Source: Pelomyxa schiedti
Lineage: Eukaryota; Protista; Evosea
Assembly (NCBI GenBank): GCA_020536535.1
Contig: JAHLWZ010000482.1
Coordinates: forward strand, 1-44,226
Length of the DNA stretch: 44,226 nucleotides
Reading direction: 5' to 3'
Shown here: piece after piece, positions 6,433 to 40,450 of the stretch
How positions within the stretch are numbered: position 1 is the first letter of the stretch
Layout: the number at the start of each line of letters is the position of its first letter
Position numbers and translations under genes: made by a program
Notes under the pieces: generated by a model
Told to the model about the DNA's origin: nothing
Databases searched by the model: none
What the model saw: only the letters and a program-made list of their open reading frames with translations

Positions 6433-6574
6433 CCTATTGCTGGCCGCTTACATCACATCACTTTTTCCACCTGGGGAGTGAATGAGCGCAACTCCGAGTT
6501 GTGAACTTCACCTTCAAAAGAAAAACCCCCGTTTGATTTCTGTGCGCACCTTTTGTGGTGTACGGTACCGTTAC

Positions 6575-8704
6575 GTGCAGCAACACCAACTCATGGAACG
6601 CCAGTTGGTGACACTGTTGGTTGCGAGGTGTACAGGTGTGTTCCACCCTTTTTTTTTCCTTGTTTCACTCAGTGAACCGTGGGCAGCTCTCTTTTTTCAG
6701 ATGACAAGGCAACAGTGAAGAAAGAAGAGCAGAGTAAAAACAGGAACTCATACAGTCAAAGAGTTCTTATTCTTCGGGACTTGTTGTCTCTTCAGAGTTC
6801 AACCCTGGTTTGGCCTTGGGTGGGTCAGTGGTTCCCCCTTTTTTTATTCTCTTGTGAGTTAAACCTGGCACTAGAAGGCCCGCACTTTGGAATCAAGAGA
6901 CCAATGTGCTCGCACATCAGTTTTCAGTGACAGTTGACACACAGTGACTCAACTCTTTCTGTGTTAGAGCAACTGCTTCTTGGCTTCTTTCTCCCTGTGT
7001 AGGAACTCTCGTTCTGTTTTTCTCTCTGATTTCATTCACAGGTCTTTGCAGAAGAAGAATCTGGCACTTAAATCGATACGCAATAATTGCGTGTTCGATT
7101 GGCGGGAAGAATGTCAGTGGCATCATTGGCTTCTTTTTAAGAGGAGACCTTTTCTTCATTCATCACTCAAGCTGGCAGAGTGGGTGAACTGGACCCAGTT
7201 CTCCAACTTGGCGTAACCACTGTGCCGCTCTTACACACGGAGTTTATTCTCTTCTGCCACTTGGTGAGGAGTGGTGCATAGCACCGACTTGGTGACTCGC
7301 AGTGATGAAGAAGCATGATTTACTGACGGCTCTGCAGCCCATATGAGTTTAATTTCAGCACCAGACACGGATATATGAAAAAATCAAAGCTCTTCAACAC
7401 TTTCTGTTCTGAGGTTTCACTCAGGAGTGCCCCATGGAAACAAACTGTATGGTATAACAGAACAACAGCGGCAGTGGGGGTAAACAGGGAAGTTATCAAA
7501 AGAATCAAGTGTGAGACAGTAGATCCTTCATCAACATCTGCTTGCTCCTTCAAGTCAACAGAAAATGAGACACAAAGGACCAAGCCAGTTCAGGAATGGG
7601 ACCATCACTGCACTGTATGATTGCCGATTTCAAGGCAAAGAAGGAGAAGTAACAAATACCACAAGAACGTAGCATAACTTCCCTATGGCAGACATGGATG
7701 GGATCACCTGCAAATTGGATCAAGTCAGTGAAACGAATTGGAAATGATTGGACGGAGCACTTCCCCACCCATAGAAACTGTTCAAACGGCACAGTGCTAT
7801 AACTTTTGGATTGCAGCCTGCTGTTCAGATGTCTCACTCACCCCTGGTGTTGTGATCTATTCTGACCTGGCGCAGCACACTACAGCACATTTCAATTTTC
7901 TTCGAAAAAATCACTGGTCGATGGAAGCCATACCACACGGAAGAATAATCTCTGGGATTGTTTTGTTTGGTGAAATATTCTTCCTTCCTTGCACAAGGGG
8001 CAGTCATGGGGAATAGTTTTCCTGTGACAGATGGCTCATCGGCTATATGTGGCAGCAAGTAAAACAGAATATATTGTAATGCCGATTAAGAAGAATGAAA
8101 ATGCGAATCAAAGAGGCACATTGGGACCACAAATTTCTTCCACATGAAAGAACTTCCAAGAGCTTGAAGTTGGCTGTTAAAATCAACTTGCCAGTGGCGC
8201 CTTTTATGTCTCTTGGTTTTTTTTTTCCTTCTGTACTGTGAGGTTGGCTTTCATTGCAACCGTGCTGAACAATAAGCCCTGTCACGCACAATTTAATGTA
8301 CCCCATAACACCAAGTCGGGGCTTCATGAATTGCAGAGACCCTTCTGGGGTGATTTGCCAGGGCCATTGTGGCTCAATTTCCTTTCCCACTTTGCCTTGA
8401 AAAATTGTCAGACAACTGGAGAAAGACATAATGCATACACATACTTTAAGAACGTCACTTCCATGAAATCTATGTTCAACATAGATTTAAAAGATGTATA
8501 CTTTTCCTGAAAGTTCCAAGGAGCTGCAGACAACAACCACCAACAACTGCCATGTCTATCTATACCCAGTTGGCTTGCGAGTTTAAAACTGAAACACAAA
8601 AATTTGGCCCTGAAATCAGATGGTCTCAATAAATTGCTTGGATCTGTGGCTTCGTTTCAGCTCAAACCTGCAGTGAACCTGAAGATGCCAACAAGAAGTC
8701 TTTG
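6575..8704. repeat. Diverged duplicated block, copy 2 (paralogous to 1243-3478)
   Basis: Same anchors as copy 1, in the same order and orientation. Confidence 0.85.
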
Positions 8705-10776: not shown

Positions 10777-11849
10777 CTAGTTTTCCTTAGAAAGAGGAAG
10801 ACCATTATCAGGGGGGCTTGTTTTTGAGTCTGTATCACCTGATTTTATCATTACAAGTAAGACAGGATCCCACTGAGAGCAGAATTTAATTGGGTCACAA
10901 TACTCCTGGTTCACCGAGGTGTCATTGAAAAAGAACCACTGGCTTCTTGACTTGCAAAGTGAGGTGTAGTGACCTGCTGCATATCCCACAATAGAAATCA
11001 ACTGGTATTCTTGGCTGTGAGTGACCCAGGTCAAAAAAAACGAAAGGATAATTAGGAATCACACCCAAATAAATGTAAAGAGAGGTGATCATCTGGATGA
11101 AGGCTGATTTTTGAGGGGTCACTAGATGCAAGAATAAGGCCTTCTCCCAGTTCCATGTTCAAGATGGCCCTGAGATTCTGGCCTGATGTTAATGGAAGTC
11201 TTAGGAACACCAATATACAGATCCACAGTTGGAACAAGCTCTAAGAGTGGGAGCACTGTTCAGTGATTTATCCACTGAATCTTGCAAAGAAATCCCAGGG
11301 ACAGTGACAAGTACATGAAACTTGGGTATAGACTCATTGAATTTCACTGTTCCTTCTTTCTGAAAGCATTCCTGTACATAGTGAGAATTTCTATGTGAGA
11401 CCACAGGGGTAAGTGTATACTGAAGGGCAGGAAAGACTCTCAGACATATTGTGGATCAGGAACTTGTTAATTACAGAGGACCCTTCATCAACAAGCGTGT
11501 TCACCAGAAGTAAGAGGAATTTCTTCACGGTTTTCACTCACTCAAGTGAAAGCAGCACCACTACACACCAAAGCGGAGCCCGCAGAGTTGAGAACATTCT
11601 CAGACCTTGATGAAAGGTGTCTGAGCAACGGTTCCCCACTGCAACCTTCCATCAAAAATGACCGTAGGAGGGATTCCGTGATCCCACCACGTCTGTTCTC
11701 AGCGAAGTTTAACAGACACTTTATTGCCTGCAGGGCGGAGTTGAGGTAACACGTCATCCCTTTTAGGTACCGTTTGCGAAAAACAGGTAATAGTGAGTTT
11801 GTTGCAACGTGCTACCGTAGTTCACCAGCCCAATCGGTTGTGCCATCAT
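10777..11849 (-). CDS. Compact ubiquitin-specific protease (USP/peptidase C19), paralog A; multi-exon; C-terminal Zn finger cut off by a stop
   Basis: Spliced Cys box MMAQPIGLVNY|GMTCYLNSALQAIKCL. His box IVGYAAGHYTSLCKSRSQWFFFNDTSV. Homologous to paralogs B and C throughout. Confidence 0.85.
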
Positions 11850-11950: not shown

Positions 11951-14900
11951 TCAACTGCGAAGGATGGGACACTTGATAATCAGAACCGTTTCAGGGAGAC
12001 AGGACACACCTGCGACAATCCTGGCCCAATGAATGTCTCCTGGCAGGGTGTGACCCAGATTTTCCTCAATTAGCTGTAGGAATGGCTTCTCTGCATCCCT
12101 TTTACCAGGCATCGAAATTTCTCTTTTCCCAATTGAAATGAGAAGGCTCTGCAGAGTAAACTTGTGGTCAGAGCACAGATGGTTTTTGGCTATTGCTTGA
12201 AGGCAGGCCATTCGCACTTGAATGATAGTCACTGGTGCTCCAGTGCAGTGAATAATGGTACTGGAAAAACAAGGAAGGCCTCTTGAACTTGTTCCTGCTG
12301 GTTTGCTTGGAGTTCGGGAGAGTTTATTTGACCGTAAGCAGCAGTATCCAGAGTAGCTTGTTGCCTTAGATGAAGTTCCTGACAGTTTGTACAGTTCAAG
12401 GGAAACTAATCCAGCTGCAATGCTGGTGGATGTAACAATTGCTGGGATGATAGAACCTGCAAGAGCATGTGCCTCAGTGATTTCTTTAATAGGCAGCCCA
12501 CGGGTCATGCTTAGAAGGTTACCTGCACTGCTCACAAATTTCAAGTGTGTTGGGTCGTCCTTATTGAAGTAAAAAGACTTATTCGTTCCAAAGAGGAGAT
12601 CAAGAAGGTCACTACAACTTTTTACTAGCATATTCTTCCAGACATTGCTTGTACAAGTCGCTTCACAAATCTCACGCAAAGGCTTTGGGCATATTTTGAA
12701 ACCAGTCCAGAAAGGTACACCTTTCTCATCAACGGACTCTGCAGGATGAACAGTCAATAGCTTCTCGATCTCTGTAACAAACCAGGTGCGCAACTGAGAA
12801 TGTATCCAAGCTTGCTTCTGCTCTTGGTTGTGTTGAAGCCCACTGTAAAGGGATACAATATTGCTAGATTTTTCACAGATATCAAAATGATCCTGTATCT
12901 GTTGGCAGCTCATATTTACAGTCAAGGGCCAATCTGGTTGGCGTGCCATCTCAGCAAAAACAGAGCCTTTTTCCCAAAAGATTTCATTAAATCTGTCTTT
13001 TCCCCATTCCATGCAATGTATCGGATTAAAGGGAAATGTCTTCCCTGTGCACACTGCTTTGGCAACGTTGGCTCCCACCACCGGTGGTGAATATTCTGCT
13101 GTGTAGTACGGTATCACAACTTTGCAAGAGCACACCAATCCCTCTGTCCCAGCTTCAAACATCGGAAGATGGTAAAAATGTGCCTTCTCATTCAGTAAAA
13201 CTCTGGCCTCAACGTTGTCAACCCCACAAATAATGGCATCAATGTTTTCCCATAGGGAATCACTAAACTCCCCTTCAAAACAAGCTTCTACCTGAAGCTG
13301 AAGAGCTCTTGAATGGGCAGATAATGAAGAGTTGAGATCAATAATTGCTCTAGATAAGGCAGTGACAGCCTTGTTCCTCTCCACATCTGACTCTCTGAAA
13401 AGCAGTTGCCGGTTGAGGTTGGATTTAGAGATTGAATCATGGTCTGTAACAACTATGCATCCACTATCTTCACATGCAATTCCGGTCATTGCAAAGTTTT
13501 TTATATATTCGCACCCAAGTGCTCCTGCTCCAACTAGAAAGGGCCGTAATCTCATTAACCTCTCTTGAGTACTCCAGCCAAAGATTTCTGCTCCCTTGTC
13601 ATATCTGCTCCCTTTGCCCTAGATTTTAATTTACTTAAAGATGGAGGCAAAACAATAAGGCGATACTGTTGTATCCAACGGTTTTACGTCAGGTAGGCAA
13701 TCATCAGCACTGATGAAATACCATTGGTGGACAGGCGTGTGTAAATGGAGGAGAGCTTTGATAACTTCTTGGGAGGCAAGTCCACCAAGGATAGAATTAA
13801 GTCCAAAAACAACGCCACCCACCTGAGGTGCCAATTTTTCCAAGAGTTCCTTGGAGACAGGAAAGTTGTAGGAATTCACTGTATCAACAATACTTTTTGT
13901 GTCCCTATCATCCCACACATGGGGACTGCATCCAGTGTCTTGCACAAAAGTTGAATAGGCCTTTATAAGTCCAAAAACTGTCATAGAAGTATGTAGATCA
14001 CAGGTTGATGGGAATGAAGGGGCTGTACTTAGACTTTGCTGTAGAGATACCTAAAGAAAGTTAACGATCTATCAGAGGAAAAAAAAAACACTACAGATGG
14101 TGGGAGCGTGTCAGTGATTGACACCCTTTGGTAAGACCCTCCACCAGGGAAAGTACTCCCTGAAGTGCCAGAAAGTTTTGTCAGAGATGAAGCAGATATA
14201 GAAAAAGATGTCTCAGTAAGTATATCTGCAATAGGGAATGGCTCAGAGGCCTCATTGAGACAATTGAGAGCTGTTCCAGAAAAGGTAATAGTATCAAATA
14301 AGGTCAGGCCATGGGATAAATCCGCGGCATTAATTACAAGTACGGTCCCCTCTAAAGCATCGTCCACAAACTTAATCTGGTCAATGGTCTTATCCATTTT
14401 CTCAATTCCCAAGTCGAAAGTGAAGGTACTGGGTCCAAAGTCATTAAAAATTGCTCCCGCAACGCCTATCGACTGTGCAGCAATAAACGGTATTCCTAAT
14501 TGTCGGCACTTTTCATCACATTGTAGGGATAATTTGTCGGGAATGGGGCCTTCAGCATACAACACTGCACTTTGATTCGAAATTCTGACAAGTAACTCAC
14601 CCTCCCTGTGCACAGTCACTTTCACATCTGGAAACCAATACGAAATCCTTTCAAGAATGACTACAGCCATCTCGTTTCCAATGCGCCCTTCTTGATTCGC
14701 AAGTAGAAACTGCGTATTTCAAGCAAGTCGAGAGGAGTGAGTTCGTTTTAGGCCAAAAGTAAATAAATTTTCAAGCTGAAAACAGGGGGAAAAAATCACA
14801 CGTTTGTATTCACGTCCTCTTGGGTCACAAGCCCCTCACAAAACAACTGCAACTCGCCCACTCCCATAAGTGCCAGATCCTTGATTGCCTCGGCGACCAA

Positions 14901-15017
14901 CGGTCCACATCCCACAATTGCAACCGTGGCGCGTCCGAGCGCCTCGACCCCCGACGCTCCGCCGAGCACCGGGAACTGCCTCGAGACCTTCATATACGCC
15001 GACGAAAGGGCCGACAT
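11951..15017 (-). CDS. Divergent monomeric Uba1/Uba6/Uba7-type Ubl-activating enzyme E1 (about 960 aa, 4 exons: about 15017-14802, 14709-14095, 14050-13666, 13618-11951)
   Basis: N-terminal SRQFPVLG and inactive adenylation domain (IVGCGPLVAEAIKDLALMGV). FCCH-like region. Active adenylation domain FLVGAGALGCEYIKN..DHDSISKSNLNRQLLFR..DNVEAR. Catalytic Cys in VCTGKTFPFNPIHCMEWG. FNKDD and AGSIIPAIVTSTSIAAGLVSLELYK. GT-AG introns restore the frame. Confidence 0.93.
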
Positions 15018-15168
15018 TGGATATTTCGTTATTATTTGCCAAGTCGGCTCTTACGTGCGCCGCAGCACCCCCGAGGGCAACTCTTTGGTTGGAGTTGCTT
15101 TTGGTCCCCAACTTGGGCATGGAATCCACCAACTCGGAGCGAAAACCTATCAAAAAACCAAAGATAAG

Positions 15169-15588
15169 ATGGACGGGCCTGAAGTACCGACGGCGCAATG
15201 GGTTGAAGACGACGAGGACTATTTGTACATCATGGTTGAGGGTTACGACTCAGCTTACAAGGAGCGTATTAATGACCGACTGAAAAACTGTTACAACTAT
15301 GTATTGTGTTTGGCGCAGTTGTGTGTGCTTTTAATACTTCACAAGGTTGTTGCTGGAGAAGGCATGAAGTTTACCGTTCCTAATGTACGGTTGTGCCCCT
15401 GGTGCAATGCGGAGAACATCCTCAAAGGAACATTCCAGCACTGCAAGCACGCCAACTGCTACAACTGTAACCGTGAATTTTGCTATTCTTGCTTGGGGAA
15501 AAAGGAGCCTGGTGGTGCATGGCCATGCGGTTGGACACCATTTCAACCTTGCCCAACAGGTGTTGCAAAGAGGCAACAGCTTCTATGA
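15169..15588 (+). CDS. Small stand-alone RBR-type Rcat (RING2) domain protein, about 124 aa, putative Cys-dependent ligase
   Basis: ATG at 15169. Probable in-frame GT-AG intron 15301-15345. CPWC..QHCKHANCYNCNREFCYSCL..WPC..C matches the Rcat pattern with catalytic Cys-x-His. No RING1 or IBR is visible. Confidence 0.8.
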   Translation: MDGPEVPTAQWVEDDEDYLYIMVEGYDSAYKERINDRLKNCYNYVLCLAQLCVLLILHKVVAGEGMKFTVPNVRLCPWCNAENILKGTFQHCKHANCYNCNREFCYSCLGKKEPGGAWPCGWTPFQPCPTGVAKRQQLL

Positions 15589-15710
15589 ACAAAATAAATT
15601 TTAAAAAAGCCACTTATAAGTTATGTGTTGGTATTTTCTCTTTTTTTCCTCTGCCACCAGGCAAAGAAAAAAAGGGAGATGCTGCTGGCAGTGATTTGTG
15701 GAGAATTGCT

Positions 15711-15968
15711 TTATAAGTGTCCTCCAGTGGGTGCATAGACCACGTCAATAACATTGGGCTCTCTTATAGTGAAGTTTCTCAGCTCCCTGGCAACGTCGTC
15801 AAGAGGTTCCCCATTGAGACGTAATATGATGTTTGCCTGCCCGCCAAAGAAACGGTTCCTTATAGTCGACGCTGCATCTTTGGCGAGAGTGCAAAGTGGA
15901 AGAACGAGTTCCTTTGGCTTGTTGGGAAAGCTGGGATGATAAATTTTGACTGTGATGCGGTCTGTCAT
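15711..15968 (-). CDS. Ubiquitin-like modifier precursor, 85 aa, C-terminal di-Gly followed by a 2-aa propeptide (TGG-HL)
   Basis: Beta-grasp pattern ITVKI..ELVL..helix..ILRLNGEPLDD..LRNFTIREPNVIDVVYAPTGG aligns with Ub [32 protein letters not shown]. It is not ubiquitin, NEDD8 or canonical SUMO by sequence. Confidence 0.88.
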   Translation of the reverse strand: MTDRITVKIYHPSFPNKPKELVLPLCTLAKDAASTIRNRFFGGQANIILRLNGEPLDDVARELRNFTIREPNVIDVVYAPTGGHL

Positions 15969-16025: not shown

Positions 16026-16052
16026 TTTTTATAGGTCGCAACACCAAGTTGG
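16026..16052 (-). promoter_or_regulatory. Candidate TATA box (TATAAAA) and CCAACTTG motif upstream of the Ubl gene
   Basis: Minus strand reads caccaacttggtgttgcgacctataaaaag, about 60 bp upstream of ATG 15968. Confidence 0.4.
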
Positions 16053-16361
16053 TGAGCCAAGTGCCGGTTTCGTTACTGTATCTTGGGTACTGACACAGCT
16101 GTGTCAGACAGGGAGAAAAAGTGCGGCACAATTCTTGTTACAAATCAAATTAACACAGCAGCCGCGGATGGTTTCCTTGTTCACTCCATTAGACTTTGGA
16201 GTGCTTGCTGTGCTCGGAAGTTCTTTAGCTGAATTATTAACTGTGCCACATTTTTCCATGTTTTGGAGGAAGTCTCCTTGTGCTCAGCAGCTTTTTTTCG
16301 GTGATCTAAAGCCTCTTTTTGACGATCAAGTATAATATTAACTTTCGTTTCTTGGTAAGAG

Positions 16362-17675
16362 TTAGGTTGGCGAGTATCTATTTCTTGAAATACCTTGAAC
16401 TTGAGAAGCCCCATGCTTCTCACACATATGACTACCATGTTGTCTCTCTTTACATTCCGGGCATAGATCTTGATCTCCGCATTCAAGGCAGGAGTACCAA
16501 CATGCGGTCCACTGCTTGCAAAGTGTGCATTCTTTTTCGGTACTTTCATCATCACTTGTTCCCCACGCATCTTCATCGTTGCCTAAAGATGGAAACCAGG
16601 TTGTAGTGGGTTGCTCAGGTAAAGTGAGATGTGGCTTTATCGGTAAATCGATATCAATCCCGGTGGGTTCAACGTCTGATTTTGTAAATACAAGAAGTAC
16701 AGGGTTCCATTGAAAGCAATACTCATTTGGATCATGGTAACGGTGCTCTACAATTGAATCGTTGAAGTAGAGCCACTCATTAGCTACATTACAGAGAGCC
16801 GTATAATGGAAACCGGCATGCCCCACAATTGACGAGAGCTGATAGGGCTGCCTTTAAAGGAAGTGACAAAAGAATAGCGTAAAGTGCACTGACCCAAACA
16901 ACATCAAAAAATTGGAGTCTGGGTAAAGAGAGATCTCTGTGGGATTACGAGAGGCTATTACGACCCCTGTACCAAGGTCCATATCCAATTTTGAGATGAG
17001 ACTCTTTGAATAACTTGAGATTTGTCTGCTACAAGAGGAGGAAAATACCGAGCTGCAATTAGGGCAGGTTCTCACTGAAGATGATACTAGTGATCTATCC
17101 ACTGAGTCCTGTAAAGAAGATCCAGCAACAGTGATAAGTACACTGAATTTTGGGATATTTTCACTAAACTTTAGCGGCCCCTCTTTGTGCGTGCATTTCT
17201 AACAAAGAGATTTGTTTCAAATGAGCATGCATAGATTGGAATTACCAAGCACCAGAGGGTCTCCGACATGTTGTGAATGAGGAACCTCTCCACAACAGAG
17301 GAGGATCCTTCATCAACAAGTGTGTTCACCAAGAGCGTCAAAAATTTCTATCAAAGGGATTAAGGGAGAGATAAAACAGAGAGCTGTACCAGAGCAGAAG
17401 ACGCCATGTGTGGGTCATTCTCTGACCTCCGCGAGATATGCCTCAGGAATGGTTCTCCACTTCCTCCCTCCATCAAAAAAGACTTGAGCAACCTCTTCGC
17501 CTTTGCATCCCCGGTTATGCAACTGTTCACCTCCTCAAAGTCCACCAAACATTTAATGGCCTGCAGGGTGGCGTTGAGGTAACACGTAAGCCCTGCCGTT
17601 CGTCAGCAGCCAAAAAAAACTTAAAAAAAACGGTGCATCAAACGTGCCGTAGTTTGTCAACCCTCCCCTGGACAT
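16362..17675 (-). CDS. Compact USP protease paralog B with C-terminal ZZ-type zinc finger; multi-exon
   Basis: Spliced MSRGGLTNY|GLTCYLNATLQAIKCL. His box IVGHAGFHYTALCNVANEWLYFNDSIV. ZZ-like CTLC..WYSCLECGDQDLCPEC..HGSH. Confidence 0.85.
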
Positions 17676-17805
17676 TGATATTTGGTATGACGTGTAACCA
17701 CAGCTGCAAAGCAGGGGGTAAAAAGGAAGATGGACCAACTTGAGTGTCAGGCGAACGAAAACAGACCGCAAAACCAAAAGAACAACCAAAACCCCACCAA
17801 GGACT

Positions 17806-19385
17806 ATGGCACAACAGCCCGCGGGGCTACACAATTATGGTGTGTCAGTACCCCAGTGATCAGTATGTCGCCAAACAACGTTTTTTTTTTCGCCCTAGGG
17901 ATGACCTGTTACCTCAATGCGACGTTGCAGGCAATAAAATGTTTGCTGAACTTTGACGAGCCAACTGAAGCCAATACTACTACAACTACTACGACATCAG
18001 CAACGCGAGACCATCCGGCGAAGAGGTTGCTCAAGTCTTTTTTGATGGAGGGAGGAAGTGGAGAACCATTCCTGAGGCATCTTGCACAGAGGTCAGAGAA
18101 TGACCCACACATGGCCTCATCTGCTCTGGTAGAGTATTTTTTTTTTTTTTGTCTTGCCCCTGTCTTCCACAAACAAAAAAAAACGTTGAGCATTCAAAGC
18201 CACACAACAGAAATTTTTGACGCTCTTGGTGAACACACTTGTTGATGAAGGATCCTCCTCTGTTGTGGAGAGGTTCCTCATTCACAACATGTTGGAGACT
18301 CTGTCTTGTCCCTCGGTCACTCTTGTTTTATAGTTGAATAACATCCTCATGTCAAGCAGGCATGCCACCAAGCCAGTTCACCCCTGAAATTCAGTGAAGC
18401 CATTCCAAAGTTCCATGTGCTGATTACTGTTGCTGGCTCTTCATTGCAAGAGTCTGTTGACAAGTCCTTGAGCACACAGTCACATAGTACCTGTATACAC
18501 TGTCATAAAGTAAGCCTTAAAGAAATGACCACAACCCATATCCAGACTGCAACCAAACAAAATTGATAATAACAATTTTGTTTGTAATTCCCAATAAGTT
18601 ACATGATTAAAGCACTTGCTATCTGAATTGGAAATGGAGCTTGGAGAGGGGTTTATCCTGGCTTGTAGTGATCCAAGCAGAATCCGGTTATATCCTGACT
18701 CCTACAATCTAAGAGTTTTCAAGTATGTCTCGTTTTCACCCTGGTTTATGTTTTTACATCTTCCTCAAGCTTGAACTATAACTTAAAATCAATTGTTGGT
18801 CATGCAGGATTCCACTATACATCACTTTGTTACACAAACAGCCAGTGGTACTTTTTCAGTGATGAAAACCTCTCTACGGATACCTATACCGACTTGAATG
18901 TGTACTGTGACAATTGGACTCCTGTGTTGCTTGTTTATGTCAGAGGGACCTTCCTCCCACCTGACGATCAGCCCGTCATATCCCACCACGATAATCCACC
19001 AAGCTTGAGCAACGAAACCTCCTGCAGTGCATTCCTTGATGACGGAGCCTTTACAGGCCCAGAACAAGTCACCTGCAGTACTTGTGAGTTTCCAACAGCT
19101 GCGTGGTACGCCTGTCTAAATTGCCAATGCACAATATGTCCCAGCTGTGAAGACAGGGGGAGGAAAGGACTGAAAGGACACAAGAACCACATTATTGAAA
19201 GGTGTGGTGTTGAAAATTCTGTGAGACACATCTACCGTTGTCGCTCCTGTAAAAAATTTATTGCCAAAGAAGAGGAGCTCTTTCCTAGCAATGGCTATGT
19301 TTATCACATGGAGTGTGCTAAAAGGTGTGGCATAGCATGTTGGTTATGTAAAAAGAAGGTCCCTAAAGAACGACAACCAAGGTAA
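17806..19385 (+). CDS. Compact USP protease paralog C with ZZ-type and LIM-like zinc fingers; multi-exon
   Basis: Spliced MAQQPAGLHNY|GMTCYLNATLQAIKCL. His box IVGHAGFHYTSLCYTNSQWYFFSDENL. ZZ-like CSTC..WYACLNCQCTICPSC..HKNH. LIM-like CRSC..YHMEC..CWLC. Internal splice sites near 18510-18615 are uncertain. Confidence 0.82.
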
Positions 19386-23382: not shown

Positions 23383-23838
23383 CAGCAACCCTCCCACGCA
23401 CCCAAAACCAGGATAGACTTTTTTTTAGCAAACTTTGGCTGCTTCTTTAACTTAAGTTAAAAGGGTTTTCCTGAGACTTTGGGGAAAATTGTCTGAAGTG
23501 TTTTGTTTTTGCTCGAGCCTTTAATGCTGCGAAAATGCTGATGGCTGTCGTGATATCAAAATCAAATCCACATGTGGCGATCGTCACAGCCAGCGACAAT
23601 GTTACAATTCATGGTCAACGCAACTTTCACACATTGGCACAGTCATCCCTTGAAACGCGTCGGCAGGCAATTCCGGTTTGATCCTTTGAACTTGTTGTTG
23701 CAAGAAGGTGCTGGCTGCAAAGAGCTGGAGGAGGAGCGGTGTGATTTGTCCCACAGTTATGCCCTTTCTCTGTGGAAGTTATACCACAACGAAGGAAAAG
23801 ACGCTGCTGCCGAAAAATTACACAGGTCCTTCTCACAG
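23383..23838 (+). repeat. Near-identical copy of the 5' part of the Tc1/IS630-like element (42071-42617), truncated by the assembly gap
   Basis: Matches 42071-42617 except for the MITE insertion and a few substitutions or indels. Confidence 0.9.
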
Positions 23839-23938
23839 NNNNNNNNNNNNNNNNNNNNNNNNNNNNNNNNNNNNNNNNNNNNNNNNNNNNNNNNNNNNNN
23901 NNNNNNNNNNNNNNNNNNNNNNNNNNNNNNNNNNNNNN
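23839..23938. other. Scaffold gap (100 N)
   Basis: Run of exactly 100 N. ORFs spanning it are artefacts. Confidence 1.
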
Positions 23939-24332
23939 CTCACTTGGAAGTCCCTGAAACCCCAAAAAGCGTTTCTTTTCTGAAGTTCTCTGGAATCACT
24001 GACTACCACTGTTTCCTGTCCAGTCCAGGCAGCTCCCAGATAATCTTGAAAACAACTTCGGCCGAGTCATGCCAGGGACACATTATAACCAAGGTGGTTG
24101 GCACCAGAAGCAACACTCATCAGATCAAGCTCAGCCACTCCAAAAGGACGGCAGAGCAAAGCATATGGAGCAGGAGGAGCAAGGAACCGAATATAGTCCC
24201 AGACTTCAGAAACAAGCAAGAAGACAACACCAGCGTATGGTTGCTTCTTACACTGCTGACTCTCAGCCTGAACAGCATGGTCAAGAAGACCACAGTCGGA
24301 ACCTCCACCACAACCACCATAGACACAGCCGT

Positions 24333-24384
<52 letters not shown>

Positions 24385-25042
24385 CACAACAACAACACCA
24401 GCAGCGGACCCAGCAACCCCAACCCCAACAACAACAGCCACGAGCACAAACATAGGCCCTCAACATGTTGCCAGTTCCAAGGACAGCAGCACGGCCCACT
24501 GTCATCACCACACCCCCACCACCACCTTGCACTTACACACATGTGGTACAGCAGCAGGGAGCTGCTGCTGATGCACCCCAGGTTCAATCACAGTTGCTGC
24601 AACAACTTTATCAAGGGAAGTGCCAGAACCGCCAGCAACAGCAGTATCATAAGCCGACGCAATCTCTCCCAAACAGCTATCCGACACCACCAAGGGGAAC
24701 CTCTTCACCACCTCATCACCCTGTTGTGCACACACAAGTGCAACAACTAAGACCACGCCAGGAACAACCACCACCACCATCACCTCAACAAGTATCTCTT
24801 GGGTTCCGCAATACACACACCACACAGCCAGCTGTTCCCCTGATGCAACAACGGGGTCAATCCCACCGGGTTGTATCACCACCACAACCGTCGCCGTTGC
24901 ATCAGTCAGCACCGCCACCAAGGCACACAGCTCCACACCTACAGCAGCAACATGCAGGATCACAACAATACCGGCAATCACAGCAATCACAGTATGTGCA
25001 TGCTATCCCGCCATCATCAGCACATCCCGCCACTGTTCCTGC

Positions 25043-25078
<36 letters not shown>

Positions 25079-25125
25079 GCAACGGTTGTGATGATGGTGA
25101 TGAGGGAGTACGTGGCACACGTTGC

Positions 25126-25170
<45 letters not shown>

Positions 25171-26262
25171 GCAGGAACAGTGGCGGGATGTGCTGATGAT
25201 GGCGGGATAGCATGCACATACTGTGATTGCTGTGATTGCCGGTATTGTTGTGATCCTGCATGTTGCTGCTGCTGTAGGTGTGGAGCTGTGTGCCTTGGTG
25301 GCGGTGCTGACTGATGCAACGGCGACGGTTGTGGTGGTGATACAACCCGGTGGGATTGACCCCGTTGTTGCATCAGGGGAACAGCTGGCTGTGTGGTGTG
25401 TGTATTGCGGAACCCAAGAGATACTTGTTGAGGTGATGGTGGTGGTGGTTGTTCCTGGCGTGGTCTTAGTTGTTGCACTTGTGTGTGCACAACAGGGTGA
25501 TGAGGTGGTGAAGAGGTTCCCCTTGGTGGTGTCGGATAGCTGTTTGGGAGAGATTGCGTCGGCTTATGATACTGCTGTTGTTGGCGGTTCTGGCACATCC
25601 CTTGATAAAGTTGTTGCAGCAACTGTGATTGAACCTGGGGTGCATCAGCAGCTCCCTGCTGCTGTACCACATGTGTGTAAGTGCAAGGTGGTGGTGGGGG
25701 TGTGGTGATGACAATGGGCCGTGCTGCTGTCCTTGGAACTGGCAAAGTGTTGAGGGCCTGTGTTTGTGCTCGTGGCTGTTGTTGTTGGGGTTGGGGTTGC
25801 TGGGTCCGCTGCTGGTGTTGTTGTTGTGGTTGCTGTTGCTGTTGCTGTTGCTGCGGCCGCTGTTGCTGCTGACGGCTGTGTCTATGGTGGTTGTGGTGGA
25901 GGTTCCGACTGTGGTCTTCTTGACCATGCTGTTCCGGCTGAGAGTCAGCAGTGTAAGAAGCAACCATACGCTGGTGTTGTCTTCTTGCTTGTTTCTGAAG
26001 TCTGGGACTATATTCGGTTCCTTGCTCCTCCTGCTCCATGCTTTGCTCTGCCGTCCTTTTGGAGTAGCTGAGCTTGATCTGATGAGTGTTGCTTCTGGTG
26101 CCAACCACCTTGGTTATAATGTGTCCTGGGCATGACTCAGCTGAAGTTGTTTTCAAGATTATCTGGGAGCTGCCTGGACTGGACAGGAAACAGTGGTAGT
26201 CAGTGATTCCAGAGAACTTCAGAAAAGAAACGCTTTTTGGGGTTTCAGGGACTTCCAAGTGA
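23939..26262. repeat. Long inverted repeat (fold-back): arms 23939-25084 and 25120-26262, 35-bp spacer; contains CAA/CAG and CAGCAA microsatellites
   Basis: Arm starts ctcacttggaagtccctg and the other ends cagggacttccaagtgag. Mirror-image polyQ ORFs. Arms differ by scattered substitutions and repeat-length changes. Confidence 0.93.
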
Positions 26263-26315: not shown

Positions 26316-27020
26316 TTATTTTTCTTTGAGGGGGTGAATTGAACAAACAACATACTTCAAGATAAAGACATTTTTCATCAAGTTATCCTTCTCAAAGGCA
26401 GACTGGATTTCCGGAATGAACTGCCCCATTGTGTCGATTCTAGTTTTCTTTGTAAAATCGGGACAGCCCAAGGTGCCATCAACTTTGGACTTTGCATGCT
26501 TTGCTGCCCACAAATGCCAGGAAAGGCGGCAGTTCAACTTCTGAGGGAGATGGCAAAGGAATAGGTGTGCCACCTCAAAGTTGTGGAAGTGTGGGCCTTT
26601 GTCTATGAAGAGATTGATGTCAGAGATCATCCCCTGAAACTCGTCAAGGTGGTCTGTGGTGAACTCTTCAAGTGCACCAATAACAAAAGTGGCATCGTTG
26701 CTCAATACGTAGGACACAATATCCCAGCATTTCCTTTCTGTCTTGTGTGTTGTGGGATTTCCTGATTGTTTGGATACAAGGATTGCTGGAAGTAGAAATC
26801 CCTGTTCAGCTCCTTTGGAGCTCTTCTCAGCTGTTGCATCTTTTCCTTGAAGTCCATGGTGATAATCATTTCATGGGCTTGGAGAATTTGAATTCCTGGG
26901 TATTAATTAGTGCGAGAGAACTGAGTGAAGAAGCAATACTTGGAAGTTGCCCACCACTGCAGTGGGTTGTCCCCTTGTTGTAGAGGAGGAAGGTTTAGAT
27001 AAGAGGACACTTCATCAGAC
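26316..27020 (-). pseudogene. DDD transposase relic, Sola2-like; may splice onto the polyQ-rich sequence at 25120-26262
   Basis: Minus-strand motifs IITMDFKEK, FIDKGPHFHN and WHLWAAKHAKSKVDG resemble the DF.EN / SDG..QYKN / HGKGPCDG triad. Superfamily assignment is from memory. Confidence 0.5.
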
Positions 27021-27084
27021 TGGAAATAAAATCTTTGAGCCCTCAACATAGTTTAAAAACCATGCTAAAAAGGAAGGGAAAGTA

Positions 27085-28697
27085 CTACATTTCAATATAT
27101 AACCGTTGGACTGCAAGAGTCTGTTCAAGTAGGGTCATTATACTTTGTTTATAGCGTGGGTCCAAGAAGGTAGCCAAGTAGAGATCACCAGCAATGGGAA
27201 AATATACATTTCTCCATCGGAACCCAAGTCTTGAAGCAAAAGCTGTAGCCATGAATGTGGAGAGAGCTCTCAGTGGCAGTTTGCAGTAGCTGTAAAGCTT
27301 TACTAATAAGAAAGTAGAGCTGAATTTGAACCTTTGAGAGACTTGCTTCAAGTCCCCGAAATGTGGGAGAATCACACTGCAGAATGCACTTGAACTCTCC
27401 ACAAAGGGAACTAGGCAAAACAACAGACTGTTTAGCTTCTGCACAACCTCGGGGCTGACTATCAGCTCAAACCTTTCTAGGTCATTACGCAGCAATTCAT
27501 TTACATCCTCAACAATGTCAACCAATCTTGCTGGTGTTAGAAAATAAAATGGCAATTACAACACACCGTTTGAGCATCTTGTATGTGGAATTCCACCTTG
27601 TGTCATTGTCATTAATGAGTTTGAGTTGTGGTTTGTTCTTTCTCAATTGGTGTTTTATCAGTAAACGTGTTGCTTTGGAGCTCCGTGAAAAATAAGAAAT
27701 CAATGGTTTAATCATTGAAAGGAGTGACTGCACATCAGGTTCCTAAGATAATAAGGAAAAGTCTCAGGACATATAGAAACACACAGAAAGAAGATTCCGT
27801 ATAGTCAGTTGCAACACATGGCAGCCACATGAAAGGTAGCCTAATCCCGGAGCTTTTGCAGTGGCAATCATGTTTGCTCCTTCGTCAGAAGCAAACTTCC
27901 ACACCTGCAATAGTTAGCATGAAGCTCCAGAAACAGTGTCAAACTACTTTGATAGAGGGCCACTCTGCGTTCATAACACAGTTGATATCTGTTGTAAAAT
28001 CAATATGTGAGAGGGTCCGCACTGGCCTCACAGCAACTAGGATCTCCAGTGGTTGCCAGTCGTGGGTAACGAGGAAAAATATCACTCCCAAGTAGCTCTC
28101 ATTGGCGCTAATTGTGTTAAAAAGGAAGGAAATACAAAGGAAACGTGCAAGCAGGGTTCAAGTGCTCCAAAAGTGTGCGAAATGGGGTGAATTGACCACA
28201 GAGAATGACAGTGAACACTGGCAAATCAAATTGGCTAAATTTTCGTTAAGCCTCTGCTGTGTACAATTTGTAAGAGGTTGTTGTGATGGCGTGAGGGCAG
28301 CAGTGTCATCCTGTGATGCCACAGTGGTAAGGGAAACAAGGGGATTATAATGTATAATAATACTTACACATTTAAAATGTAGTCGAAGATGGTTCATCAA
28401 CGACGTGGTCTGCTGATCACCACAGGCCAAAGGTTGAGAACAAATCTTGCACACAGCAGATTTCCCATTCAACTCGAAGTATACCCACACAGGACTGGTG
28501 CGTTTTCGTCCTTTTTTCGTTTCGTGCCACACCGAAAAGGCCTCAACACCCCCGAAATTTCTTTATTGATTTAAGGGAAATTATGGTTGGTGACCAACTA
28601 CAAAAAACCAGCTAACAGATAGCCAAGTACTTGTTGGGACTGGGCAACGAAATTTCAAACGGTACTTGCCAAGTACTTACTTGAAATAACAACCCTG
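27085..28697 (-). mobile_element. hAT DNA transposon, truncated, with intron-containing transposase and one terminus (CAGGGTTGTT.. at 28697)
   Basis: BED finger SPVWVYF..CKIC..TTSLMNHLRLH. hAT hallmarks DTRWNSTYKML and ATFLDPRYK. CAGGG terminus with subterminal ccaagtactt repeats. C-terminal dimerisation domain not seen. Confidence 0.85.
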
Positions 28698-38376: not shown

Positions 38377-40450
38377 TCAGTTTCCTCCGGCCCCATAATC
38401 ATCCAGCAGCATTTGCCAGCGGGCAACCCTGGCACACGGGTGTTCCTGGTTCTGCATCCGGGTTAGGGCTTTGTTGTCTGTCTTGACAACACATCCGACT
38501 CCGTGTATATAGCTGCGGAATTTCTTAAGTGCCCACACGACTGCCGCCGCCTCTAGCTCACACATGGTATCATACTTCTTTTCGTGGGGTGTGGTGACCC
38601 TGCTTGCAAGCTCAATAATGCGTTCCCCTCCCTTCGCGTCCATTTGTACCAGTACGGCCCCCATTCCCACCTTGCTAGCGTCCATGTGAATTTCCCGCCT
38701 GAACTCGGAGCTGTAATCGGGGTACTCAAGCAGTAGTTTCTCGGCAATTAGGTGCTTAATGTGTGTGAACGCTTCCTCACAGCGCTCATCCCACACCCAT
38801 GGCGCACCCTTCACGCCCAACTCTCTTAGTGGCACCGCCACTATGGCGAAGTCTGGCACAAACCTTGTGTAGTAGTTCACCATGTTTACGAATGTTTCCA
38901 ACTCCCCAGTCCATTGCCTCGGTTTCGGCCAGCCAGTGATTACCTTGATTATACCCTCGTCCATTCCCTGGCCCCTCCTTGATCACGCCCAGCCGCCGCA
39001 TCGTGTCGATCTCCTCCCCCACCATCTCCTTTTCTTTTGGAGACATGACTTTCTCTGGTCTGCACATGGTTCTGCACGGCTTAATTGGAATGTGGTGCTC
39101 CAGAAGTGTTGTCCTCCCCGGCTTAGCCCGGTCGTTCGTGAACAGGTCACTGAACTCCGTTTGTAGTTGGGTTAGTGCTGCTCTTTGCCCCTCTGTGAGG
39201 TTTTCCCATGTGATGCTGGCGGTTTTCCACTCAGCCTCATCCGTCTGTACTGTGGTGATGAACAGTTGGTTCACCCTTTCCTCTGGGGCGATTTCGTCAT
39301 ATGGGTCCCTAAGTTTCAACAGCATAGGGGGAATCGCCTGTGCAGTGTCGGCCTGTTCCGCGCTTCTCATTCTTTCCTCCTCTACTGTGACTGGCCACGC
39401 CACCGCGACGGGCTGCCCGGCCCTCACCACTAGTGTGGCCGATCCTTTGTTGAGTAGGCCCACGGTCACCACTCGCAGGTCGTCGAGCTGGGCAACACGG
39501 GGGTCCCCAAATGCCATTCCTCGCGGGAGTAGCACCCATCGCAGCCACACCCGCTTTCCAGCATGTGATGGACTTACCGACTCCACCGTGAGCCGGCGTG
39601 TGGTACCCGGTGGTACGTGCTGGTCCATAGTGGCAATTAGAGTGGCCTTTCCGTCGTCGTTCGTGGGGTTGATAAAGTCCCTCTTCCAGTCCCCACAGCG
39701 CACGCATCCTTTTGCCATTGACAGCTCGGCACCCACCTTCCACAGCAGGTCTAAGCCTATAAGGGCTTGGACTGGACACCCTTGGATTATGATGAAGTCG
39801 TGTTGTATCTTTTGCCCGCAAATGTGTGCCTTCATCCTTGCACGCCCCATTGCCAGCACCCGGCCTCCAATGCATGCAATTCTGCCACACCACGGCTCCC
39901 TGGCGATGTCCCCATCAGCCCATTGTATCCAACGGAAGGTGGCCTCATCCAGTATAGATATCGTCACGCACGTGTCCAACGTTAGCATAAGTCTCTTGCC
40001 ACCAATCCTTCCCCTGATAGTAGGTAATGCGGCACCTGATCCCCCATCCTTGAATATGCACACCCTGCCTCGTATCACGTTCTTCTCCCCCATTGGGTGG
40101 GTATCAGTGTCCATCCTCAGGTCTGCCCATGTAACTGTCTTGCGTGCTGTGGTCACTCCGGTTGGTTTCTCAGTGTCCCCAACTGAGCCTGGAAGGCTCC
40201 CCCTTTCTCCACCCAGTGGAGTGCCCATGGTGTCATCTGACACTGATGGGTTGGCCAGTGTAGGGTTAACAACTGCCAATACCACGGTTCCAGGGGTGAC
40301 GTGGTGCCCCAATATCTCTCCATGACTATAAATATTATGATTGTGCGGTGGGCCCAACAATCCAGCCTCACACGTAGGGTTATATTCGAGCGGAGGGCCC
40401 AACAATCCAACCTCTCTCGCCGATTTATTCCTGGTGGGTGCGCCGCCCAC
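38377..40450 (-). pseudogene. pol: aspartic protease, RT with deleted catalytic core, RNase H
   Basis: LDTCVTIS and ALIGLDLL protease motifs. RT start (EIDTMRRLGVIKE) is joined out of frame to the thumb (VNYYTRFVPDFA). No YxDD is present. Confidence 0.88.

Follow-up and report, generated by a model that had tools for sequence, protein, structure and literature searches.

To our knowledge, only three pairings between UBA1-class E1 enzymes and modifiers are established, namely UBA1 with ubiquitin, UBA6 with FAT10 and ubiquitin, and UBA7 with ISG15, and all of these modifiers are recognisable relatives of ubiquitin. URM1, UFM1, ATG8 and ATG12 are instead activated by non-canonical E1s (UBA4, UBA5 or ATG7), and the C-terminal processing of SUMO and NEDD8 precursors is well established. 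The residue at position 72 of the modifier is read by the E1: Gln576 and Asp591 of yeast Uba1 recognise ubiquitin Arg72, and their UBA3 counterparts, Arg190 and Tyr207, admit NEDD8 Ala72 and reject Arg72, with Arg190 acting as a gate (PMC3731359). The neighbouring position matters for removal, as the L73P mutants of ubiquitin and NEDD8 are still conjugated and their conjugates resist deconjugation by deubiquitinases (DUBs), CSN and SENP8 (PMC5419743).

In the anaerobic amoeba Pelomyxa schiedti, an 85-aa open reading frame (ORF), hereafter Ubl, sits in an 8.6-kb gene group composed of USP1, E1, Rcat, Ubl, USP2 and USP3, within the 44,226-nucleotide stretch of DNA that was analysed (the window). 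On a modest balance of probability, this ORF is a real, unannotated single-exon gene that encodes a lineage-specific, conjugatable ubiquitin-fold modifier.

Each of the closest described systems shares some features of this locus and departs from others. Similar to the NEDD8/NAE (APPBP1-UBA3) system, the Ubl is a single Ubl domain with a Gly-Gly masked by a short extension, has Ala at the equivalent of position 72, and lies next to an E1 with a basic gate (Lys in the cluster E1, Arg190 in UBA3); however, it does not belong to that family by sequence, its tail is YAPTGG compared with LALRGG of NEDD8, and NAE is a heterodimer, whereas the cluster E1 is a single UBA1-class chain that includes an SCCH domain. 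With SUMO (Smt3 / Rad60-SLD) it shares a T-G-G end followed by a short extension and the lack, in the alignment register described below, of an Ile44-type hydrophobic patch, and Rad60 SLD2 is the top structural match of its model. Unlike SUMO, it has neither a PF11976 match nor a flexible N-terminal tail, it carries Pro where SUMO has Gln before TGG, and its cluster holds USPs and a UBA1-class E1 instead of SENP/Ulp proteases and SAE1/UBA2. The ISG15-UBA7-USP18 and FAT10-UBA6 systems also combine a non-ubiquitin Ubl with its own single-chain UBA1-class E1 (a candidate in the present case), while the GG tail of ISG15 is likewise masked and a USP-fold protease is dedicated to this modifier, and UBA7 and UBA6 match the cluster E1 almost as well as UBA1 does. 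ISG15 and FAT10 are nevertheless tandem di-Ubl proteins that end in ubiquitin-like tails (LRLRGG or CYCIGG) and can be recognised by sequence as ubiquitin-family members, whereas the Ubl is a single orphan domain; moreover, the genes of P. schiedti lie together in one cluster, with a stand-alone Rcat as the candidate ligase. Finally, the L73P mutants share with the Ubl a Pro at P4 (ubiquitin position 73), but theirs was engineered, whereas the Pro of the Ubl is natural and may have prompted adaptation of the three USPs encoded in the same cluster.

Reading Frame and Coding Potential of the Ubl ORF

The Ubl coding sequence occupies positions 15,711-15,968 on the minus strand and consists of an ATG start, 85 codons in all and a TAA stop in a single exon. 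The ORF listing thus agrees with the initial annotation, which had described an intronless 85-aa ORF ending in YAPTGG-HL at this place, and assigns it to the minus strand. The translation ends in ...VVYAPTGGHL, in which the Gly82-Gly83 codons (15,720-15,725, minus strand) correspond to ubiquitin G75-G76 in the hhalign register and would form the predicted mature C-terminus, and the His84-Leu85 codons (15,714-15,719, minus strand) specify a two-residue C-terminal extension. By analogy with known precursors, this extension would need to be removed before adenylation. Neither LRGG nor QxGG is present in the tail, which reads PTGG followed by HL, and lysines occur only at residues 8, 17, 19 and 30; the earlier descriptions of a TGG end lacking both motifs and of lysines restricted to the N-terminal third therefore stand.

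An in-frame TAA lies immediately 5' of the ATG, so the frame has no possible upstream extension in its own exon. No plausible internal intron was found in the ORF. A 33-nt GT..AG stretch within it was considered and rejected because it is shorter than the verified nearby introns (43-45 nt) and its removal would delete the first β-strand. The ORF is present in a single copy in the genome. Among the 85 ATG-initiated ORFs of 60-130 aa in the window, three carry GG within the final 8 residues, namely the Ubl and two low-complexity ORFs that are antisense. On a codon log-odds scale trained on securely identified exons of the window, the Ubl reached 0.155 bits per codon, in the same range as the E1 exons, ranking 10th of 92 ORFs and highest among the six frames at its own location.

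It is rather unlikely that the ORF arose by chance or is a decaying remnant, either unexpressed or yielding no functional protein. Such an origin would be in keeping with the fact that chance ORFs of 80-130 aa are common in the window, with the absence of the Ubl from public annotation, RNA contigs and homologue searches, and with its intronless structure in a genome that has 7.4 introns per gene (PMC8887013). However, a chance ORF would hardly combine a Ubl fold and a Ubl-dominated list of structural matches with a GG at the ubiquitin register, nor would it be expected to have a TATA box 60 nt upstream and top-decile codon usage, or to be flanked by an E1 and by USPs without counterparts elsewhere in the genome.

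Promoter, Transcription and Annotation

A TATAAAAA box (TATA box) is located at 16,026-16,033 on the minus strand, about 60 nt 5' of the Ubl ATG, and is preceded by a CCAACTTGG motif at 16,044-16,052 on the same strand, a second copy of which lies in the divergent E1/Rcat promoter (15,108-15,116). Six exact copies of CCAACTTGG, starting at 1866, 1947, 1969, 7203, 15,108 and 16,044, were found in the 44 kb window, compared with about 0.3 expected per 9-mer, and three of them fall inside 110 nt (1866-1977); with up to one mismatch, the window contains 33 matches versus 17.8 expected. As four of the exact copies sit outside the cluster, this amoeba probably uses CCAACTTGG widely, as a promoter element or transcription-factor site, and the motif would not be peculiar to the Ubl cluster. 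The Ubl and Rcat genes converge, and their stop codons are separated by a spacer of 122 nt. An inverted repeat, CTGCCA...TGGCAG, together with the T-rich stretch that it encloses, lies in this spacer at 15,640-15,700 (minus strand), 3' of the Ubl stop, and could serve as a common 3'-end element of both genes.

In shallow assemblies of three single-cell RNA runs from the study that published the genome, no contig covered the Ubl ORF, and contigs from the same runs covered parts of USP2 and USP3; because of this shallowness, a missing contig is not evidence that the transcript is absent. The exact Ubl sequence is missing from a 15-billion-protein collection that contains Pelo_6037, the protein of the Rcat gene, and therefore the ORF appears to be unannotated. 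Likewise, the published P. schiedti annotation, for which transcript evidence was used, has no Ubl protein, yet it includes the Rcat gene 120 nt away. The Ubl may thus be a reminder that short single-exon genes get missed in protist annotations. The assembly searched here is the single-cell genome of this archamoeba (52.4 Mb, 5,337 scaffolds), and the paper that describes it nowhere mentions ubiquitin (PMC8887013).

Sequence Relationships

The initial annotation had described the Ubl as novel and proposed a profile search against the known families. A Pfam scan of the protein gave no match to ubiquitin, Rad60-SLD, Urm1, Ufm1, Atg8 or Atg12 at E up to 1. When the P. schiedti genome itself was scanned, PF00240 produced 152 matches and the Ubl contig (C482) was not among the 150 of them that were listed, and PF11976 did not match the Ubl ORF; the same scans do recover a canonical SUMO gene (on contig C567) and many ubiquitin-like genes. 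Wider searches gave a similar picture. A word-indexed search of 5.8 billion proteins returned zero candidates, and the best hit of a PDB sequence search, the mouse Ubl 1wia (E 0.16), was not significant. Searching 1.84 billion representatives with phmmer returned five matches, all of them long repetitive proteins; they were rejected as artefacts, because their scores are sums of numerous weak matches to residues 40-78, as illustrated by a 364-aa protein in which the same 36-residue repeat was matched five times.

Features that define the individual families are missing as well. The tail Y-A-P-T-G-G lacks the Arg72 and Leu73 of ubiquitin, and PF00240 gave no match at E up to 1. In place of a SUMO-like N-terminal tail, strand 1 begins at residue 4 of the AlphaFold2 (AF2) model, in line with what had been claimed, and the protein ends in P-T-G-G with no PF11976 match. 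ISG15 and FAT10 have two tandem Ubl domains and the Ubl is a single domain of 85 aa. As to URM1, UFM1, ATG8 and ATG12, no profile matched and the neighbouring E1 is of the canonical UBA1 class with an SCCH domain. By every sequence test run, the Ubl would therefore be a member of none of the known families.

These results bear directly on the idea that the Ubl arose as a paralogue of SUMO or NEDD8, diverged very strongly and still depends on canonical SENP/SAE or NAE enzymes for its processing and activation, in which case the neighbouring E1 and USPs would serve ubiquitin. We regard this as very improbable. The T-G-G end as in SUMO, the Ala at position 72 as in NEDD8 and the presence of Rad60 SLD2 and SUMO-2 among the best structural matches would suit such an origin, but neither the Rad60-SLD nor the ubiquitin profile matches, the own-genome scans that find the SUMO gene pass over this ORF, a SUMO-type N-terminal tail is missing, and the neighbouring E1, which lacks the Gln/Asp pocket for ubiquitin Arg72, is unlikely to be a ubiquitin E1.

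Predicted Fold and Ubiquitin Register

A β-grasp fold had been proposed for the Ubl from its sequence, along with structure prediction as a check. The single-sequence AF2 model, although of low confidence (pLDDT 65), shows the element order E-E-H-E-H-E of ubiquitin topology (strands 4-9 and 19-24, helix 29-40, strand 48-51, helix 57-63, strand 73-76), followed by a tail with pLDDT below 50, that is, flexible in the model. When the model was compared with 48,161 PDB representatives by VIA-align, the top 50 matches were almost all ubiquitin-like domains, with Z scores of 3.7-4.7 (every one below 5) and rmsd of 2.5-3.5 over 56-65 residues. Rad60 SLD2 was the best match, and NUB1, FAT10, TBCE, Herp, Rad23, BAG1, ISG15, SUMO1, SUMO-2 and ubiquitin were among the others. 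Foldseek against the PDB found no match at E up to 0.001. Language-model neighbours of the Ubl include the ubiquitin/Rad60-SLD, YukD and TmoB β-grasp clusters, and its Atlas shape matches include USP7 Ubl, RAWUL, YchF C-terminal and Fer2_3 folds. Topology and match list, both derived from this low-confidence model, thus place the protein in the β-grasp ubiquitin-like superfamily, which agrees with the proposal.

Alignment by hhalign to 20 ubiquitin domains of the same genome was weak (P = 0.028, probability 1.8%), and it pairs Ubl residues 50-78 with ubiquitin residues of about 44-71 with one gap. In this weak register, A79-P80-T81-G82-G83 correspond to ubiquitin 72-76, and six residues separate the last strand from the final Gly, the same as in ubiquitin. 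The Pro reported at position 73 agrees with this weak alignment (P = 0.028), as does the reported lack of lysine at the K48 and K63 equivalents, where the equally weak register places Glu54 and Glu70; ubiquitin Ile44 and His68 are paired with Arg50 and Asp75. The C-terminus thus has the layout of a type I modifier tail, in that G82-G83 lie at the ubiquitin distance, are masked by HL and belong to a segment that is flexible in the model.

A ubiquitin-fold protein need not be conjugated, and the Ubl may instead act as an adaptor, or as a decoy or regulator that binds the E1, the USPs or Rcat, with a GG that is incidental or a relic. Many of the top structural matches are indeed non-conjugated UBL domains (NUB1, TBCE, Herp, Rad23 and BAG1), the contig carries no E2, and Arg50 and Asp75 stand at the Ile44 and His68 positions of the hhalign register. 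This reading is nonetheless judged unlikely, if not strikingly so: GG follows the last strand at exactly the spacing found in ubiquitin, the short extension resembles that of a precursor, the E1 retains both the ATP motifs and the catalytic Cys and its position-72 pocket is remodelled in a way that fits Ala79, and three dedicated USPs would make little sense in the absence of a cleavable tail.

The Cluster E1

The E1 of the UBA1/UBA6/UBA7 class is encoded by four exon-sized ORFs at 11,951-15,017 on the minus strand, and all three gaps between them hold frame-compatible candidate GT..AG introns. The exons of this gene and of the USPs were used one by one as single-exon queries. Pfam identified ThiF (3.4e-37) and UBA_E1_SCCH (6e-17) and did not detect a UFD; the match to human UBA1 reached 1.3e-56, and those to UBA1, UBA7 and UBA6 ranged from 1e-56 to 1e-41. 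Both the ATP motifs and the catalytic Cys align with human UBA1. The pocket for position 72 is different: in an ungapped HMMER alignment to human UBA1, Lys and Val stand at the two positions equivalent to Gln576 and Asp591 of yeast Uba1, where the human enzyme has Gln and Asp. As the Gln/Asp pocket needed by ubiquitin Arg72 is gone, the cluster E1 is unlikely to be a ubiquitin E1. Its basic gate, taken together with the Ala at position 72 of the Ubl, follows the NEDD8/NAE pattern and suggests, at the level of sequence, that this enzyme does not serve ubiquitin.

No close paralogue of the E1 exists elsewhere in the 52 Mb genome, and a search for orthologous loci with the E1 returned generic UBA1s as the best matches (27-36% identity) and no sister locus. 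A predicted complex of the 534-aa E1 exon with Ubl(1-83) scored 0.22 against a mark of 0.34, a result that speaks neither for nor against their binding.

The Rcat Protein and the Three USPs

Convergent with the Ubl gene, a gene at 15,169-15,588 on the plus strand encodes a stand-alone Rcat/IBR-like cysteine-rich protein, present in GenBank as KAH3762116.1 ('hypothetical protein Pelo_6037 [Pelomyxa schiedti]', 124 aa). Its Pfam matches, IBR_1 (3e-4) and IBR (7e-4), are both below the gathering score. The Pelo_6037 model and the Rcat ORF are the same except for one 45-nt in-frame intron, which encodes a hydrophobic 15-residue stretch when unspliced; tiny in-frame introns can thus hide within ORFs in the P. 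schiedti genome. A protein search with Rcat found only its own NCBI entry, and a contig search with that protein found none.

USP1 (10,777-11,757, minus strand) lies downstream of the E1 and consists of a Cys-box ORF (11,542-11,757) and a His-box ORF (10,777-11,034). USP2 (from about 17,600 down to 16,181, minus strand) is the next gene 5' of the Ubl and has the same orientation, with a stop 212 nt upstream of the Ubl ATG; it has a His-box ORF at 16,362-16,826 and a Cys-box segment at 17,531-17,594 that is paralogous to USP1. A spliced RNA contig skips a 43-nt intron at 16,351-16,393 (GT..AG on the minus strand), from which it follows that USP2 is spliced and has its stop at 16,181. USP3 (17,730-19,385, plus strand) is arranged head-to-head with USP2, with inverted repeats I1 and I2, and matches the Pfam UCH profile at its Cys-box end (E 0.025) and its His-box end (E 0.0045); an RNA contig spans 19,187-19,381. 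The 5' halves of USP2 and USP3 are inverted duplicates with 90-98% DNA identity (17,256-17,501 and 18,017-18,302), but their zinc-finger tails share only 40% protein identity, which suggests either a recent duplication or gene conversion, confined to the exons of the catalytic core.

When USP3 was used to query the genome, exactly three matches were obtained, namely the cluster USPs themselves, with USP1 as the last. The USP described as adjacent in the initial annotation is one of these three, and their subfamily was found nowhere else in the genome. More generally, the 52 Mb genome contains no paralogue of the Ubl, the E1, Rcat or the three USPs outside this cluster. No E2 (PF00179) was found on the Ubl contig.

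Proposed Mechanism and Implications

If the Ubl is a conjugatable modifier, as we favour, the 85-aa precursor would be trimmed after Gly83 with loss of His-Leu, and one of the three cluster-specific USPs would be the likeliest enzyme for this step. The exposed Gly-Gly would then be adenylated and thioesterified on the catalytic Cys of the adjacent UBA1-class E1, whose Lys/Val pocket would suit Ala79 of the Ubl and disfavour ubiquitin. From there the Ubl may be passed to the catalytic-type Cys of the neighbouring stand-alone Rcat and onward to substrates, with a route from E1 to Rcat that could be direct or could run through an E2 encoded elsewhere, and the modification would be reversed by the cluster USPs. 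On this reading, the Ubl would be expressed, processed, activated, transferred and conjugated. The earlier suggestions that an adjacent USP is the maturase and that the Ubl resists ubiquitin DUBs are both plausible; that ubiquitin DUBs would ignore it is consistent, by analogy, with the behaviour of the L73P mutants. Should conjugation occur, EPNVIDVVYAPTGG-type remnants on lysines would be its trace in the proteome.

A more far-reaching possibility, which is quite improbable, is that the cluster constitutes a complete Ubl pathway that arose, or diverged beyond recognition, in Pelomyxa and works orthogonally to ubiquitin, with an E1 Lys/Val pocket that excludes ubiquitin, a natural Pro73-type tail that ordinary DUBs do not see and that only the three co-evolving USPs handle, and transfer by Rcat that is possibly E2-free.

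If true, a modifier of this kind would represent a fourth UBA1-class pairing, found in an amoebozoan, and would imply that the origin and divergence of whole Ubl pathways can still take place within single eukaryotic lineages. It would bring together a sequence-orphan modifier with a natural Ala72/Pro73-type tail, an E1, USPs and a minimal Rcat ligase in one cluster, thereby offering a compact, natural, ubiquitin-orthogonal system for E1 gating at position 72, for the reading of the P4 residue by USPs and for the question of whether an Rcat domain is able to act in the absence of RING1 and an E2.

Other Features of the Window and the Genome

Several additional features were observed in the window. 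An 'IFI44-like' label for neighbouring vWA genes was not confirmed, as Pfam gives vWA only, and therefore the locus was not read as an immune island. Around position 25,000, a large, near-perfect inverted duplication (23,572-26,258), interrupted by a gap of 100 N at 23,839-23,938, contains poly-Gln/Pro-rich ORFs with mirror copies on both strands; either a palindromic duplication or a single-cell assembly artefact may account for it. A BED zinc-finger ORF (Pfam zf-BED, 7.8e-6) at 26,316-28,532 on the minus strand, after which more ORFs follow on the same strand, may encode a hAT-type transposase, and an ORF at 38,786-40,450 resembles a retroelement and matches the RVP protease weakly.

Elsewhere in the genome, well over 100 ubiquitin repeats are distributed over many polyubiquitin loci (contigs C711, C202, C106, C166, C830, C893, C2083 and others), and dozens of divergent ubiquitin-like domains are also present, a ubiquitin gene complement that is unusually large for a 52 Mb genome. 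Contig C1260 carries an E2 (UQ_con, 2.1e-23) and an E1-like fragment about 6 kb apart (398-703 and 6562-6927); the fragment shares 26% identity with the cluster E1, and this contig may represent another case of linked ubiquitin-pathway genes.
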